A stretch of 64,000 nt of DNA, taken from the NCBI GenBank assembly GCA_946965045.2, contig OX337228.1, positions 4,960,001 through 5,024,000 of the forward strand, read 5' to 3'. The notes under the pieces are model-generated. The model made no database searches. It saw only the letters and a list, made by a program, of their open reading frames with translations, and was not told the DNA's origin. This document shows, one piece after another, positions 32,081 through 39,746 of the stretch. The stretch comes from Epithemia pelagica (taxonomy: Eukaryota > Protista > Bacillariophyta). How positions within the stretch are numbered: the first letter of the stretch is position 1; each line of letters opens with the position of its first letter. The position numbers and the translations under genes are program-made.

Positions 32081-35000
32081 ATGGCTCCTTCAGGACCGAA
32101 TGCAACTGATAATGCTTCGGTCGCCGGGCCTGGTTCCCTGCTGGCCCCAAATGATAAATGGATTCCAGTTACGTGGATGCCTCACACAAACCTCTCCCAG
32201 ACGTCTCACGTCAGTGTTAAAATTCGTTCGGTCCAAGTGACGAGAAAACGTAGTTACGGATTTTCAAGCATCAATCGTGGTGAAAGTCAAAACCCTGCAG
32301 ATTTAAACGACGATGAGGGCGAAGAAGAAGATGAATGGAGAGTCAGGGTGACGTTGTGTCATGGGGGAGGCAACGTGCTTGAAAATATGTGCTCTCATTT
32401 GTCGTTAAGCAGTCAAACTCCTGCAGCTTCTGTTGAACCGCGGTCGTATTTCAGCTCGACGAACCTTGAATCGACATTTCATATCATCCCTCGAGTTTCG
32501 GGATCGACACACGAGTGCCACTGGGAGAATGTTGTCCATCTTGCGATGAGATGGAGAGATGTGCCTAGAGACTCTTATTTCTTGTTCGAAGTGCTTGATT
32601 GGGATAACTCTGTGGTATGTGGATCGTGCAAAATAACAAGGAATAGGCTCCTTTCTGCGCCTCACACTTCCGTGCTCCAAATAACAGATCTATCGAGCTT
32701 TTCTTCCACTGTTTTCCAGGTATGGAAGGCTTCAGACAGGATTACGACGGGTTGAGCTTACAGCAGCCCCGCTTGATCCGTGCCGCAACTATGGCCTCTA
32801 TCCACTTGTGCGGCGGAGCGAACGAAAGGACGAAGATAACTTGTTCGCAGAGAAAGATCCTGTATGGAAGGCATCCTTTATTCTCAATCAGATTTCTCGA
32901 TTCGATGAGAAGAATCGAAACTACGGAGTGTTTGGCGCGATACCGTCTGTACCGTGGCTAGACAGTTGGGAAAGGGAAAGCTGTCAAAAAGTTATCGCGA
33001 ACATGGAAGCAGAGGACCAAAACTGGAGAGACCGAGACAACAATCGTCTAGGATGGCTTATCGTTGAACTGCCACATAGCTTGTTCGATATCCCGATTAT
33101 GCACGAGGAAACATTCTACAACACACCCACAGAAGGGGCATGTGGGGCAATTTCTCCCCTCGAGATGGCCGTGTACAGAAAACGGAGAGCCGCGACCTTG
33201 AATGGGCATGGATCTCCTAGCTTCGACGTTCTGGATTTGGCGGCATTTTTAGATTATGAGAACGAAAACGACAATCCTGTGGAAGACAAGTATCGAACCT
33301 TGGCACACGATCTTCTCCGTGGATTGGTTGACCCGGCGCTTAAGCCAGATCGAGAACAACGTACGAAATTGGACGCCATCATTGATTCTCCATCGCATCA
33401 CCCCAGTAGAGAAGAGAAAGATTTGCTATGGCGTTTCAGGTTCAGTCTGGTTGACAACCGACGCGCCCTGACAAAGTTTTTGCTTGCAGTTGATTGGACG
33501 GTTGACAGTGAAGTGGTCCAAGCCGTCGAGCTTCTGGAGCAGTGGCGCAAGAGGAGTCCCATAGAAGTGACAGATGCTCTGAAACTTTTGGGAAAGCATG
33601 TGGCCTTCCAAACAAATCTTGTCAGGTCGTACGCGATTGACACTTTAGCAGCTGCTCCTGATAGTGAGCTACGGCTGTACCTTCTTCAACTCGTCCAGGC
33701 ACTCAAATATGAAACAACAGACGACCCAATGGATAGTCAACCTGGCACTCCCGAGAACAGAGAACAGACACAAGCAAATGAGCGCAACGAACGTCTTTCA
33801 TCTCTGGCCAACTTTCTTATCCATCGGGCAGCTGGTAATCTTGACTTGGCCAATTTCCTTTACTGGTACTTGAAAGTTGAAAAGCAAAGCCCGACACATG
33901 GCGCAAGATACCGCAGAGTCTTTGCGGCATTAGAAGAACGCTTGTCTGCTACAGAGTTTGTCCTCCCAGGAGTCTTCAACGTGGCAACACAAGATGATAT
34001 TCTTAATTCGTCTTCACGACCTTTCCGAACGATTGTCGACTCCGTATCCAAAATTGGGTCGTCGTTTCGACACACCGACAATCCTTCTTCGACGTCTATG
34101 GATGGAGAATCTGGTAGGAAAGCTGGTCGTAAGCGAACAGTGTGGGATGTTTTGGTCGCCCAGGTAAGATGTGTGACTTGTATTTCTTATACGACCGATT
34201 TCAAATTGATTCTAACCTATTCTCCATCTTTGACGTAGGATAAGTTCATTTCGGGTGTGATGGAAATTCAGCAGCGATGTCGTGACGTAAGAGGAAAGAG
34301 AGATGCCAAGGAAGCCCAACTGCAGTCGACACTTGCGGAGGAGGGATTTGATCGAAGCTCGCAGAGACATGCGTTTCCCCTTCCTTCAGCCCCGAATATT
34401 CTAGTGAACGGTTTAAGGCCAGATTCAGCAAAAATGTTCAAGTCAGCCCTATATCCTGCACTTGTTGAATTCCACGTCGAAGCTACCGTTCCTTCGGCAT
34501 CACAAGATGTATCTCATCCACAGGGCACGATGTCGGGATACAAAGTAATCGTTAAGACAGGAGACGATCTTCGCCAGGACCAGTTGATCATCATGATGAT
34601 ACAACTCATGGATGGGCTGTTGAAGCGAGCTGCACTTGACCTTTGTCTTACCCCATATGCAGTGATTGCAATGTCCCCGTCTTCTGGGTTGGTCGAATTT
34701 GTTGATGGCTCATTACCGATATCCCAAATCTTAACCAACCATGCTGGATCGATCATGCAGTTTTTTCAGAGCACATCGCCCGAAAAGGGAGCCAAGTATG
34801 ACGTACGGCCGGAAACCATGGCCACGTATGTTCGTAGTTGTGCGGGGTACTGTGTCATTACTTATATATTGGGTATTGGAGACCGTCATCTGGATAACTT
34901 ACTGCTTCGTTCTTCGGGTCATTTCTTCCATATTGACTTTGGATTTTGCTTTGGCAGGGATCCGAAGCCTCTTCCACCGGCGTTCCGCTTAACGAGGGAG

Positions 35001-35398
35001 GTAAGTTTTGAATTTCATGGTATGCACCTGTGTTGCTTGTGTTCTTCTTTCTCTTACTTGGAGTTTGTTAGATGGTGGACGGTATGGGAGGGATCGATAG
35101 CGCCGAATACCGTCAATTCTGCTCTTTAGCATGCCAGGCGTTCAACGCGATTAGGAAGAGCGCTGGATTGGTGCTGAACTTGTTGAATCTCATGGGCGAT
35201 GCTGGCATTGATGATCTTTCGAACAACCCATCGGCGAATGTGGACGGAGTTATATCCAAGGTCGAAGAGAGATTCCGCCTTGATTTGAATGACGAACAAG
35301 CAGAACGATACTTCAGGGGACTTATTGACGATTGTCTCGCCGCCATCGCTCCGAGAGTCATGGACGTCTTTCACTCGTTCTCGGTGGCCCGCAGATAG
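32081..35398 (+). CDS. VPS34: Class III phosphatidylinositol 3-kinase (4 exons)
   Basis: Exons 32081-32614, 32688-34163, 34239-35000 and 35072-35398. C2 region, helical domain (LLWRFRF, LTKFLLAVDW, LYLLQLVQALKYE) and kinase motifs KTGDDLRQDQL, GIGDRHLDN and HIDFGFCFGRDPKP. Confidence 0.95.
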
Positions 35399-35704
35399 CT
35401 TGGTTTATCTTTCTCATCTCACGTCTGAACTGTCGAAGTATCGGTTATCGGTTCTACAACATTATACATGTAGTTTACTGCAATCCCCGTTTATTCATCG
35501 GTAAGACCAACTTTTTGCAGTACAATTTAGTATGCAGATCCGAAATCCGACGTATGTAATCGTCTAACAAATCTACGAATAGAAAACGTCATCCATCTCT
35601 ATGTTGTGTTCATGTGGCGGGGTGGCGTTGTCCAATGATTCCTCTTCCGAAGCAATCCAATCTCTGAATGTCATTATCCAAAAGCTCTGAAATCTGAGAG
35701 GCCA

Positions 35705-37039
35705 TCACAGATCTTCGAGGAAAACAATTTCCAGACCTTGGTTCATGTACCAGGCCCTCCAGCACTCACGAAGAGGATCATAAAAGACCTTCGGCTGCGT
35801 CAGTGACGAAACATGAGCAAATCGACGAAGTGCCTTGGCTTGGTACATTTGTTGTTCCTTGTCAAACGCTGTTTGCGCAGCTAATAGAGTGGACGGCTTC
35901 AATGAGCATGTCATTGCCCGTTCTTCAGGCGGCGGCATGTTCACTGGTCTGGGCATGAATGTATCAGATAAAGGCTCCTCAAGCTTGGTAAAGGATGTGG
36001 GGAAGATTCCAACTCCCCCCTCACCAATCCGCGATTGATCCACGGCTACGCACATGGTTCTCGCTAATCTTCGTGCTCCTTTGGAGTGGCCAATGCGATG
36101 AAAGAATTCAGTCGCATCCTGTCCGGCATGCACCATGACGTTTTCCGGTGATCCTGGATGAGACAATAAAAAGAGGGACATGTCGTATATATGACCAGCA
36201 ATTCCAACCAAACAATCATCAAACGTATTGCATCCGGCCAAGACATAATCCATATAGCACAGTCCAAATCGAAAATATACAAACTTGGAGAACTGCGGAG
36301 GTTCAAAAGGCGCCGACTTGTCAGTCAAACTTCGGGAAGCAGCTTTCTTTCCTACTGTCCATCTTTGAAGAATCCATTCATAATCCCGACGCCAGAGACT
36401 TTTCCAAAGTAAGTTTGATGATTCCCCGCTTTCGACCCATTTTTGACATGATTTGCTGGCGCAGCTAAACGTTACAACGTCTATCGGTTTCAAAAAAGAC
36501 ATGACGTGAATCCAAGCGTCTGCGGGAAGCCCTAACATGTCATCAGCATCGTCCGAAATTCCATTCGTTAGAGACAAGTGCGGTTTGATGGATCTAGGCG
36601 AGGGAATATGAAGTGGTCTCCGAAGAAGCAAAGAGGCAACTGGTTCGCCACAATAAAAGTTTCCTGCCAATTCGAGCAGATCTCCCGTAGAAACATTTTG
36701 TTTGATACGTTGCAAGGGCGATGTACTTCTTGAATCAATTTCTACTCCTTCGAAACCAGAAACAATCCGAAAGAATTTGGCAATGTGGAGAACAAGCGAA
36801 AACAGGGGAGATCCTGAAAAGAAAAGCCCGGCCCTATTTAGCATTTCTTCTGCTTCCCTCTCATTCCATCGGACCGAAAGCCTTCTCTCCATATCTTGCT
36901 CTGCATACACATGATTACAGCTGATTTGTCGACGAAAGATGGTTATTGCGCTAAGAGTGGCTACCAGGAGGATCTGAGGGCCGTAAACGCTGCCGTAGAG
37001 GTAAACTAACTCGCTCATGTCGTCCGAAACGTCAATCAT
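35705..37039 (-). CDS. F-box plus cytochrome b5-like domain protein with N-terminal hydrophobic segment
   Basis: F-box LGLPADAWIHVMSFLKPIDVVTFSCASKSC...LWKSLW; b5 domain LVGIAGHIYDMSLFLLSHPGSPE...AGQDATEFFHRIGHSKGARRL. Confidence 0.85.
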   Translation of the reverse strand: MIDVSDDMSELVYLYGSVYGPQILLVATLSAITIFRRQISCNHVYAEQDMERRLSVRWNEREAEEMLNRAGLFFSGSPLFSLVLHIAKFFRIVSGFEGVEIDSRSTSPLQRIKQNVSTGDLLELAGNFYCGEPVASLLLRRPLHIPSPRSIKPHLSLTNGISDDADDMLGLPADAWIHVMSFLKPIDVVTFSCASKSCQKWVESGESSNLLWKSLWRRDYEWILQRWTVGKKAASRSLTDKSAPFEPPQFSKFVYFRFGLCYMDYVLAGCNTFDDCLVGIAGHIYDMSLFLLSHPGSPENVMVHAGQDATEFFHRIGHSKGARRLARTMCVAVDQSRIGEGGVGIFPTSFTKLEEPLSDTFMPRPVNMPPPEERAMTCSLKPSTLLAAQTAFDKEQQMYQAKALRRFAHVSSLTQPKVFYDPLRECWRAWYMNQGLEIVFLEDL

Positions 37040-37599
37040 GGTGATCTAAATGATTGCTGCCAGAAAGCAAGGTTTCAGGAATTCAGAGCTTACTTGAGGA
37101 GACGTCGACTTGTTCCACCGTCAGATGGCAGCATCTGCATCTGGGCTTTGAGTCAGAGTTTATGCGACCGAAGGACCTGCACCCGCCTCCGTCTTCTAAC
37201 TCCTACGAGGAACTCTCTAGAGCTAGTTGAGAATGGTAAACATGGAAAGAGCCATGGTCCTACTCCTAGAAAGGAACCAATGCTCTGTGGTCAAACTAGT
37301 CATAATAATATTTATCGGTGCAACTTTGCCAAAGCAGATCTGTTTGCCAAAGCAGACAGCAGGCCCTAAGCCCGAAAAGGCAAGGTATTGTAGGACTGCG
37401 ATGCTGATAATTACGACATAGCTTTACATCAGTTTCTGCGTCCCATATGCGACTAAAAGGTACTGTGTAAATTCTAAAACTTCAAACTCCTATGGATTAA
37501 TGACCCCATCCAATATTGATCAAAAGAGAAAAATCATTCCATCATTTCGCGACAGTGACCGGATACTTTCCATTGACGACCAGCCACGACATAGTGAAC

Positions 37600-38910
37600 A
37601 TGATGAAAGACGATCCAGAAGAGGGTACATCGACGGCGGAACTTACACCTCTGAAAGTTTCAGGTGTTGGTATGGTGGATGATGATACCGAAATTAAGGA
37701 CAATTCGGCAGCGAGTGAAATGATTATTCCATCGGGTGACAATGAAGGCGCCACGAAAAAGAGAGCGTCTCGGAAGTCTCGACCAGGGACCATTCAAGTC
37801 AAGTCGGCGACTCCGACAAAGATGGGACGCAAGAGGTCTTCAGAAAGTGCCACCGCTGTTTTCATCAAATACACCGCCTTGTTTCTTTTGGTTGCGCAAA
37901 TGGTAGGACTTGTCCTTCTCATGCGGTACAGTCGCACAATTCACGATCCCGACCAGCCATTGTACTTGGCTTCAACAGCCGTCTTTGTGATGGAAGTAAT
38001 GAAATTGATCATTTGCATTTTGGTAATCACAGTTCAATCCAACGGTGCTATCTTTCGAGAGTTGCATGAACATGTGATCCAGTCCCCTTTGGAAATTGTC
38101 AAACTTACTGTCCCCTCCTTACTTTATACCATTCAAAACAATCTGCTTTATTTGGCCTTGACGAATCTAGATGCAGCAACATACCAAGTGTGCTATCAAC
38201 TAAAGATCTTAACAACAGCTTTGTTTTCAGCTCTGTTGTTACAACGCAAATTCTCTGGTCAGAAATGGGCATCGCTCGTGATACTTACGGTTGGTGTTGC
38301 CATTGTCCAAATTTCGGGCTCTGGTGACCAACATACTCATTCCGATACGAGCAGCGACGCCACTGATTCACAGCAACAACATAATCGCATCATTGGTCTT
38401 GTGGCAGTGTTGTGTGCTGCATGTACGTCAGGTTTCTCGGGAGTTTACTTTGAAAAGATCCTCAAAGGAAGTCGCACTTCCCTCTGGGTTCGTAATGTGC
38501 AAATGGGATTGCCGAGTATTTTGATTGCCTACGTCACGGTGTATTTCAAAGATGGGGTGGCGGTACAAACACAAGGGTTCTTGGGGGGCTACACATCCAT
38601 TGTGTGGACGGTCGTGACAGTACAAGCGGTTGGTGGTTTGATTGTGGCGACAGTCGTGAAGTACGCCGACAATGTGTTGAAAGTCTTTGCCACTTCTTTC
38701 AGCATTGTTGTGTCGTGTATCATATCGGCCTTCTTATTTGAATTTCATCCAACATGGATGTTCCTCTGTGGTGCCAGCCTCGTTGTCACCGCCACCGTTA
38801 TGTACAGCAGTCCAGATGGCCTTGGACGAACAGTGCGCAAAACAAGAAAGAAAACGAGTGCTGCAATTCTTCCGACTAGCCAGAAAAGTAAATCAAAGTC
38901 AATAAAGTAG
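37600..38910 (+). CDS. SLC35A-type nucleotide-sugar transporter (UDP-Gal/CMP-Sia/UDP-GlcNAc family)
   Basis: Motifs STAVFVMEVMKL, VPSLLYTIQNNL, LDAATYQVCYQLKILTTALFS, SGFSGVYFEKILK, SLWVRNVQ and VVKYADNVLK. Probable ATG at 37600. Confidence 0.93.
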   Translation: MMKDDPEEGTSTAELTPLKVSGVGMVDDDTEIKDNSAASEMIIPSGDNEGATKKRASRKSRPGTIQVKSATPTKMGRKRSSESATAVFIKYTALFLLVAQMVGLVLLMRYSRTIHDPDQPLYLASTAVFVMEVMKLIICILVITVQSNGAIFRELHEHVIQSPLEIVKLTVPSLLYTIQNNLLYLALTNLDAATYQVCYQLKILTTALFSALLLQRKFSGQKWASLVILTVGVAIVQISGSGDQHTHSDTSSDATDSQQQHNRIIGLVAVLCAACTSGFSGVYFEKILKGSRTSLWVRNVQMGLPSILIAYVTVYFKDGVAVQTQGFLGGYTSIVWTVVTVQAVGGLIVATVVKYADNVLKVFATSFSIVVSCIISAFLFEFHPTWMFLCGASLVVTATVMYSSPDGLGRTVRKTRKKTSAAILPTSQKSKSKSIK

Positions 38911-39746
38911 GAGTAGAATTCGGTTTCATGGACCTTGAAAAGCAAGATACCTTCTCTCCTACGGTCGGTTTTGTGGTTATGGTTTATGGTACTAGACTCC
39001 ACTAGCTAAGGATGCCATCGTACTAACAGACCTTACCCTACCTAGCTAGAGGGTACTCCTACGTTTCTTGACATAACAAAAATGTCTGCGATTTTCTGGG
39101 TCATCGATAGAGACTAATGTAGATTAAAATTCTAGGCGTAGACTTCTACTCCTAGCTAGGAGTACCTCCCTAAATCCGTCGCCCCGGCCGCGGTAGACGA
39201 TTCCGCTGCGACTGCGAGTATGCCTCGTAGATTCGATAGTCTATTGACATTAGAAGTTAGGAGTACTTATATATACCTCTCTAGGTAGGTAGCACATCCG
39301 CTAGCTTACCTCCCCATAACCTATTGGCCAACCTCAATTCTCTACTCTCTACTACCTAGGGACACAGCGCACGATCAGGTATGTGTCAGTTGTCCAGAAA
39401 GCGGGCTGGCGCGCGCCCGCGCGCAAGAAGAAAATTCGTCGGATGCAACACGGGGTATCGTGGAAAACCATGGCGCTTCAGAGGTCGGTCCGAAACCCTA
39501 AACATGTACCTTTTTCCATTCGAAACCTTACAATCGTCCCTATGACCATGGTTTGACTGGTTGTTACCTTTCGAATGGAAAAAGGTACATGTTCTGATCT
39601 TCATTTTCTACTTGACATTGTGTACAAGGTGTGGTGCGTTGCGTGGGATGGTTGGGTGGAGTGTCGCGTCCCGTCCCGTCCCATCCCATCGTATCGATCG
39701 AAACACAGAAGTAATAAAATTATGCATACGCTATAGTGTTGTATTT

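Follow-up and report, generated by a model that had tools for sequence, protein, structure and literature searches.

F-box proteins take their specificity from the domain that lies behind the F-box, and the locus described here raises the question of what a cytochrome b5 domain, normally a haem protein, would be doing in that position. In a 64,000-nucleotide stretch of contig OX337228.1 of the diatom Epithemia pelagica (referred to below as the window, all positions being those of its forward strand), an uninterrupted open reading frame (ORF) of 444 codons with an ATG start had been noticed in a sequence-only reading as an F-box fused to a b5 domain, and proposed to encode an SCF adaptor gated by haem, iron or redox state. 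Judged by domain scores, motifs and folds, the encoded protein is both an F-box protein and a member of the cytochrome b5 family, and its sequence can be aligned over the full length to at least 34 relatives. The coordinates of the gene, its parts and its neighbours are collected in Table 1.

The gene, its transcript and its neighbours

Four public sequencing runs were aligned to positions 34000-39500 of the window as an RNA check on the gene, the sequence-only reading having supposed that the two domains lie on one transcript. The run designated X5 is cDNA-like, as a 4,992-nt contig from it omits the two GT..AG introns of the neighbouring phosphoinositide (PI) 3-kinase gene and then continues without a joint from 35070 to 37266, a stretch that includes the entire ORF and a further 227 nt upstream of the ATG. 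Because this contig splices the introns of the neighbour and crosses the ORF unbroken, the F-box/b5 gene can be said to be transcribed and intron-less, and the F-box and the b5 domain are on the same continuously assembled RNA rather than on separate transcripts; as contigs, the X5 data carry neither strand nor level. The PI3-kinase gene is convergent with the F-box/b5 gene, with about 300 bp between the two stop codons, and since one contig bridges both genes, their 3' ends or untranslated regions must abut or overlap. On the other side, X5 depth falls to 0 at 37312-37495 and coverage returns over the divergent nucleotide-sugar-transporter gene, which is probably intron-less too, as a jointless RNA contig runs from 37559 to 38941. 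The two short upstream ORFs in the leader make translational control of the F-box/b5 gene possible. A 169-nt contig from the marine metatranscriptome run X1 is identical to the b5-coding part of the gene (window 36076-36244), and therefore this organism or a very close relative was present at sea and expressing the gene.

The sequence of the ORF is identical in three of the runs except for one missense site: position 35955 of the window is A (Met362), and the three runs and the copy of the gene in an ENA assembly have G (Thr362), in a variable loop of the protein. Besides the site at 35955, indels in the flanks set the ENA contig (ERZ21939226 ctg1354l) apart from the window, and from these differences the two would seem to be separate haplotypes, or separate assemblies, of the same species. 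The database twin with Thr362 (P0001) is the first row of the alignments and models used here.

Table 1. Features of the F-box/b5 gene and its surroundings in the window (aa, amino acids; res, residues of the encoded protein)
Feature	Position	Strand	Evidence or remark
Two GT..AG introns of Vps34-type PI3-kinase gene	34162-34236, 34999-35069	(+)	RNA-derived contig
Complete single-exon coding sequence, 444 codons and stop	35705..37039; stop 35705-35707	(-)	ORF list; RNA-derived contig, run X5
Family-specific C-terminal extension, res 335-444	35708..36037	(-)	Alignments; models
Cytochrome b5 domain, res 262-334	36038..36256	(-)	Pfam, Foldseek, VIA
Axial ligand codon H318 (GHS, res 317-319)	36086-36088	(-)	Translation
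Axial ligand codon H294 (HPGS, res 294-297)	36158-36160	(-)	Translation
Helical linker, res 218-261, near-invariant R218-D219-Y220, W222, W227	36257..36388	(-)	Alignments; model
F-box, res 169-217, helices 173-181, 185-192 and 196-203, then start of LWKSLW helix	36389..36535	(-)	Pfam; structure
Low-confidence linker, motif AG-x-[FY][FYC][SC]G at res 70-76 and 125-131	36647..36832	(-)	Alignment A1
Juxtamembrane motif RRQISCNHVY, res 36-45; family consensus RRE-M/I-SCNHCY	36905..36934	(-)	Alignment A1
Hydrophobic segment, res 17-35, putative signal-anchor or transmembrane helix	36935..36991	(-)	Kyte-Doolittle; model
5' leader, as far as RNA contig reaches	37040..37266	(-)	X5 contig end at 37266
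Upstream ORF, 16 aa, out of frame with main ATG	37090-37140	(-)	Translated; inside RNA-covered leader
Upstream ORF, 10 aa, out of frame with main ATG	37223-37255	(-)	Translated; inside RNA-covered leader
Nucleotide-sugar transporter gene (PF04142)	37516-38910	(+)	Divergent, about 476 bp from F-box/b5 ATG

Relatives and their distribution

A word search returned 34 full-length relatives with identities of 32-63%. Among the first-round relatives that were aligned, the Cyt-b5 domain is found in 32/32 and the F-box in 31/32, and because the two are shared in this way a chance motif is excluded. When 1.84 billion representative sequences were searched exhaustively with the family profile, 260 clusters had E<=1e-30, a threshold that is out of reach for a lone b5 domain, and the family can be put at about 250 clusters at 50% identity. 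In nearly all of the best 150 of the 260 clusters the match extends from the F-box as far as the C-terminal end of the profile. Repeating the word search with a broader alignment (A3) yielded nothing further among the matches listed, which were b5 proteins. Some automatic JGI annotations already list both domains.

The named members come from Epithemia clementina, Fistulifera solaris (GAX25997.1) and Conticribra weissflogii (KAL7468537.1), that is, from both raphid pennate and centric diatoms, and Phaeodactylum and Thalassiosira pseudonana are not among the names recovered for family members. The phylogenetic distribution, which the sequence-only reading had proposed as a check on the fusion, can be mapped in part: conservation across pennate and centric diatoms holds, but a restriction to diatoms does not follow, as most members are metagenome or transcriptome contigs that bear no species label. 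In a quick tree, a large clade of about 93 representatives contains the gene described here and has HPGS at the first haem-ligand motif, with RRE-x-SCNHCY in about 73 of them; there are further HPGS clades, among which Conticribra is found, and a clade of 27 members, with support of 1.0, in which the motif reads HPGL. Members of this HPGL subfamily (P0151, P0159, P0163, P0165 and others) have an N-terminus that begins MIRL, a conserved SNTRP motif behind the b5 domain and a C-terminus that is shorter and ends soon after YYDP..W..W, and they may be paralogues with a different target.

The F-box and its helical linker

The F-box, whose text is LGLPADAWIHVMSFL..., was a motif call in the sequence-only reading and proves to be a true one: Pfam F-box (PF00646) scores 27.4 bits at residues 169-204 against a cut-off of 20.5, with the match to residues 170-217 by the Pfam F-box-like model lying under that model's own cut-off, and the same domain is matched in nearly all of the first-round relatives, as noted above. 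When the family profile of F-box and linker was compared with the proteins of the PDB, the best match was FBXO4 (3l2o, E 7e-7), and seven F-box proteins solved with Skp1 were matched in all (FBXO4, FBXO3, cyclin F, FBW7, AnkB, FBXL5 and Cdc4). The FBXO4 alignment extends past the F-box and through the LW..RD..W..W residues of the linker. In an hmmalign alignment of 177 relatives, from which the conservation counts given here are taken, the Leu-Pro pair of the F-box is kept in most (L171 in 140/177, P172 in 137/177), I177 and L183 are also conserved, and the linker is more uniform still (W212 in 169/177, R218 in 170/177, D219 in 169/177). The linker helices (residues 206-225, 228-237 and 252-267) are modelled with pLDDT above 88. 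From these features of the sequence we think it fairly likely that the protein works through Skp1 in an SCF complex.

The cytochrome b5 domain

Both axial-ligand histidines that the sequence-only reading had picked out, in HPGS and GHS, are present as H294 and H318 within a complete b5 domain, to which Pfam Cyt-b5 (PF00173) gives 47.7 bits at residues 271-332 against a cut-off of 23.7. This part of the protein is 38% identical to the b5 of the rat outer mitochondrial membrane (OM b5), without gaps and over the entire b5 core (E 8.5e-10), and Foldseek superimposes it on the same protein (1awp/1eue) with a probability of 1.00 and an rmsd of 1.6 A over 65 residues; b5 matches in the VIA structural search have Z scores of 5.6-6.0. 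H294 is kept in 176/177 relatives and H318 in all 170 that are aligned at that site, and the residues of the haem pocket are hardly more variable (F290 in 174/177, F313 in 171/177, A322 in 168/177). C276 and C330 are conserved as well. Haem binding is strongly implied because the ligands and pocket residues are near-invariant, and the domain very probably does bind haem. Taken with the conservation of the F-box, the alignments suggest that purifying selection has acted on the F-box and on haem binding alike.

The surface of the domain departs from that of classical b5 proteins in a consistent way. Across an identical set of 62 residues, this protein has a net charge of -1 and the family an average of -1.2, as compared to -7 in rat OM b5, and the acidic ring at the haem edge of classical b5 is replaced, position 303 being V, 321 being G and 324 being R or K. 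Exposed basic residues are conserved instead (R/K307 in 85%, R323 in 88% and R/K324 in 70% of relatives), which suggests, as far as an alignment can, that the b5 face is a family-specific partner surface and not the classical face for docking of reductases, P450s or cytochrome c.

The C-terminal extension and the structure models

The part that follows the b5 domain consists of a Pro-rich loop, a helix (residues 386-406) and a three-stranded sheet that carries the motif YDP-x4-W-x2-WY, including D421, W427 and W430. D421 is kept in 161 relatives and W430 in 162/162 of those aligned there. This extension has no Pfam match even at E up to 10 and no structural match, and it is modelled with pLDDT of 80-97 in both of the AlphaFold2 (AF2) models that were made. 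A Pfam search of the whole protein at E up to 10 found nothing besides the F-box and b5.

Confidence in the full-length AF2 model is high only from residue 165 on, and moderate for the N-terminal helix. Residues 165-444 modelled alone (from 42 sequences) gave a mean pLDDT of 91.9 and a pTM of 0.90, with three helices each for the F-box and the linker, followed in turn by the b5 sandwich, the loop, the helix and the sheet. According to this model the F-box, linker, b5 domain and C-terminal extension would form one rigid module, so that a separate domain is present C-terminal to the F-box, made up of b5 and the extension and predicted to be fixed to the F-box through the linker. When the same model was compared with 48,161 PDB chains, only 25 reached Z>=2: 14 are haem domains of the b5 type (highest Z 6.0, over model residues 57-181), nine are F-box rows, mostly Skp1-bound structures (Z 2.2-3.8, over model residues 1-99; Fbs2, Cdc4, FBXO31, FBXO3, beta-TrCP1 twice, FBXW8, SLY1 and Fbw7), and the list is completed by an Elongin complex and a Legionella protein that is uncharacterised. 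Low Z scores are to be expected for a motif of about 45 residues such as the F-box, and the selectivity of the list matters more. Fold searches with the whole protein (Foldseek against the PDB, VIA and the ESM Atlas) found only b5 domains and meaningless matches to the long N-terminal helix, and a feature search of the ESM Atlas gave a single weak row (0.87) to a b5 "fragment" family.

The N-terminal segment and the putative tether

The hydrophobic segment near the N-terminus, already noted in the sequence-only reading, bears closer inspection, its 19-residue Kyte-Doolittle mean being a borderline 1.57; the corresponding segment is hydrophobic in the relatives too, with values of 1.6-2.5 in most and an average of 1.74 (n=102). 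It forms a long helix in the full-length AF2 model (pLDDT 65-70), and as a predicted anchor it probably holds the protein on a membrane. The flank on its N-side has a net charge of -4 and RR follows directly after it, an arrangement by which most of the protein would lie on the cytosolic side, the side of Skp1; the flanking-charge rule, applied to 15-residue flanks, favours the cytosolic orientation in just 60 of 102 relatives. The juxtamembrane motif that begins with this RR is present in 102 relatives, and in alignment A1 conservation is 90% or higher at R36, S40, N42 and Y45.

Targeting by a signal peptide or plastid presequence was considered for this segment and rejected. The hydrophobic stretch, of about 19-25 residues, has an acidic N-flank and is conserved in sequence together with RRE.SCNHCY, and an F-box delivered to the ER lumen or the plastid would presumably be without Skp1.

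Residues 41-164 are mostly modelled with pLDDT below 50 in the full-length protein, which fits a flexible tether. Within this part the motif AG-x-[FY][FYC][SC]G occurs twice (36812-36832 and 36647-36667 on the reverse strand), each time after LL-D/E; there are two copies in the closest relatives and three in some, and the motif could serve in docking or lipidation.

Comparison with known systems

Several described proteins share parts of this architecture. The animal protein FBXL5 resembles it in joining an F-box to a domain with an iron-containing cofactor, so that the output of the ligase can follow metal status, and the F-box of FBXL5 is itself among the PDB matches of the family F-box profile (6vcd, E 0.005). 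In FBXL5, however, a di-iron hemerythrin four-helix bundle lies N-terminal to the F-box and leucine-rich repeats (LRRs) recognise the substrate, whereas the diatom protein carries its cofactor domain, of the bis-His haem b5 fold, C-terminally and in the position of the substrate receptor. Where FBXL5 has its hemerythrin, the 164 N-terminal residues of the diatom protein comprise the hydrophobic helix and the low-confidence linker, and Pfam matches to hemerythrin (even at E up to 10) and to LRRs are absent. FBXL5 is a functional analogy and not a relative, as there is no homology outside the F-box.

FBXO4, the best match in sequence among solved structures, has the same succession of F-box, helical linker and globular recognition domain. 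The recognition domain of FBXO4 has a GTPase-like fold, and the protein differs from the one described here in lacking haem, a membrane anchor and the C-terminal YDP..W..W clamp. With CYB5A and CYB5B the b5 domain shares its fold, the HPGx and GHS ligand motifs and the pocket residues, and membrane tethering (predicted here) would be a further likeness; these proteins differ in their C-terminal tail anchor, their length of about 130 aa, their acidic haem edge, their role as free electron carriers and their lack of an F-box.

In full-text literature searches for the F-box in combination with b5, and for the F-box, Skp1 and cullins of diatoms, an F-box/b5 fusion did not come up in any paper. The sole published pairing of a ubiquitin ligase with b5 that we found is HERC2, a HECT-type ligase polypeptide with a b5-like domain (PMC9001736, PMC3673628). 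HERC2 is set apart as a giant animal HECT enzyme in which the b5-like domain is one among many modules and which is without an F-box. A haem-binding b5 domain in the recognition position of an F-box protein is, to our knowledge, not among the described classes.

What the fusion might do

The mechanism that we infer leads from membrane anchoring and orientation, by way of assembly with Skp1 and Cul1 and the binding of haem, to possible gating. The N-terminal hydrophobic helix would hold the receptor on a membrane, and after a flexible tether of about 130 residues the F-box would dock on Skp1. The Trp-rich linker and the C-terminal extension would clamp the b5 domain where other F-box proteins carry WD40, LRR or Kelch domains, the b5 domain would bind haem b through H294 and H318, and its haem-loaded face would be a recognition or sensor surface. 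As far as this point the balance of probability is slightly in favour of the proposal, namely an SCF substrate receptor, held on a membrane, in which a haem-b5 module serves for recognition or sensing. In apo-b5 the half of the fold that binds haem is lost, and on these grounds the supply of haem, and possibly its Fe(II)/Fe(III) state, would decide whether a target is engaged or whether the receptor is stable, so that haem, iron or redox status would be coupled to proteolysis at that membrane.

That such gating by haem or redox state is the point of the fusion, as the sequence-only reading had it, is a tentative idea, plausible but somewhat doubtful. The fuller proposal, of a haem- or redox-sensing ubiquitin ligase receptor of the diatoms' own, with at least three subfamilies, tethered to a membrane and switching the degradation of targets, must be put a shade more cautiously still. 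Haem-regulatory Cys-Pro motifs were not seen when the protein translation was inspected by eye. The E-box CACGTG, a possible iron-responsive element of diatoms, is absent from the 476-bp region upstream of the gene, which counts only weakly against gating, and over the whole window it occurs at 16 sites against 14.25 expected. The haem of bis-His b5 proteins is six-coordinate, is usually tightly bound and takes up no gases, and a simple sensor of free haem or gas is therefore not what one would expect unless the affinity has been tuned.

The tightness of haem binding in b5 folds, which is established knowledge, also lies behind the alternative that we would place first, that of an SCF receptor in which haem is structural only and the b5 domain is a constitutive binding module that senses nothing. 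The anatomy would be the same as for a sensor, with b5 exactly in the position of a substrate-binding domain, and the conserved exposed residues round the haem edge fit a fixed interface. Conservation of the ligands does not separate a sensor from a structural module, because the structure needs the ligands too. Enzymes on which b5 docks at the same membrane, such as reductases, desaturases and P450-type oxygenases, could be the targets of such a module, but the acidic docking ring is largely gone and the classical b5 partners are thus not obvious candidates. We regard this alternative as rather unlikely in itself, if quite conceivable.

A membrane-bound carrier of electrons to a diatom-specific partner, and not a ligase subunit, would be suggested by the complete b5 core, its 38% identity to OM b5 and a membrane tether like that of classical b5. 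The F-box would then recruit Skp1 independently of a cullin or be a helical scaffold, and F-box proteins outside SCF complexes do exist, yeast Rcy1 and the RAVE complex being cases of cullin-independent Skp1. Yet no reductase or oxidase domain is fused to the protein or adjacent to it, the neighbouring genes being those for the Vps34-type PI3-kinase and the nucleotide-sugar transporter; the acidic surface for docking in electron transfer has been lost; and the Leu-Pro and hydrophobic positions of the F-box are strongly conserved, which a mere scaffold would not need. The electron carrier is accordingly an improbable reading. An artefact of annotation or assembly, in which two genes were merged or a pseudogene or chance motif was mistaken for a gene, is hardly to be credited, given a single stop-free ORF, RNA-derived sequence that is unbroken across it and the same architecture from end to end in more than 150 representative proteins drawn from numerous assemblies and transcriptomes.

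Implications for diatom biology

Among algae, diatoms are those in which iron most often limits growth, and we know of no described machinery by which they sense iron and haem. In this setting the F-box/b5 fusion is a candidate for coupling protein degradation to haem, iron or redox state. Should the ligase be gated by its haem domain, a metal or redox input into the SCF system would have evolved independently in this lineage, as a counterpart in function, built from unrelated parts, of FBXL5 in animals and BRUTUS in plants, and it would provide a first handle on iron and haem sensing in diatoms. Without gating, the family would still offer a new recognition module and an uncharacterised fold in its C-terminal clamp. 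In either case there is now a concrete gene for knock-out in model diatoms, one that is of interest for the iron, haem and redox biology of these algae.
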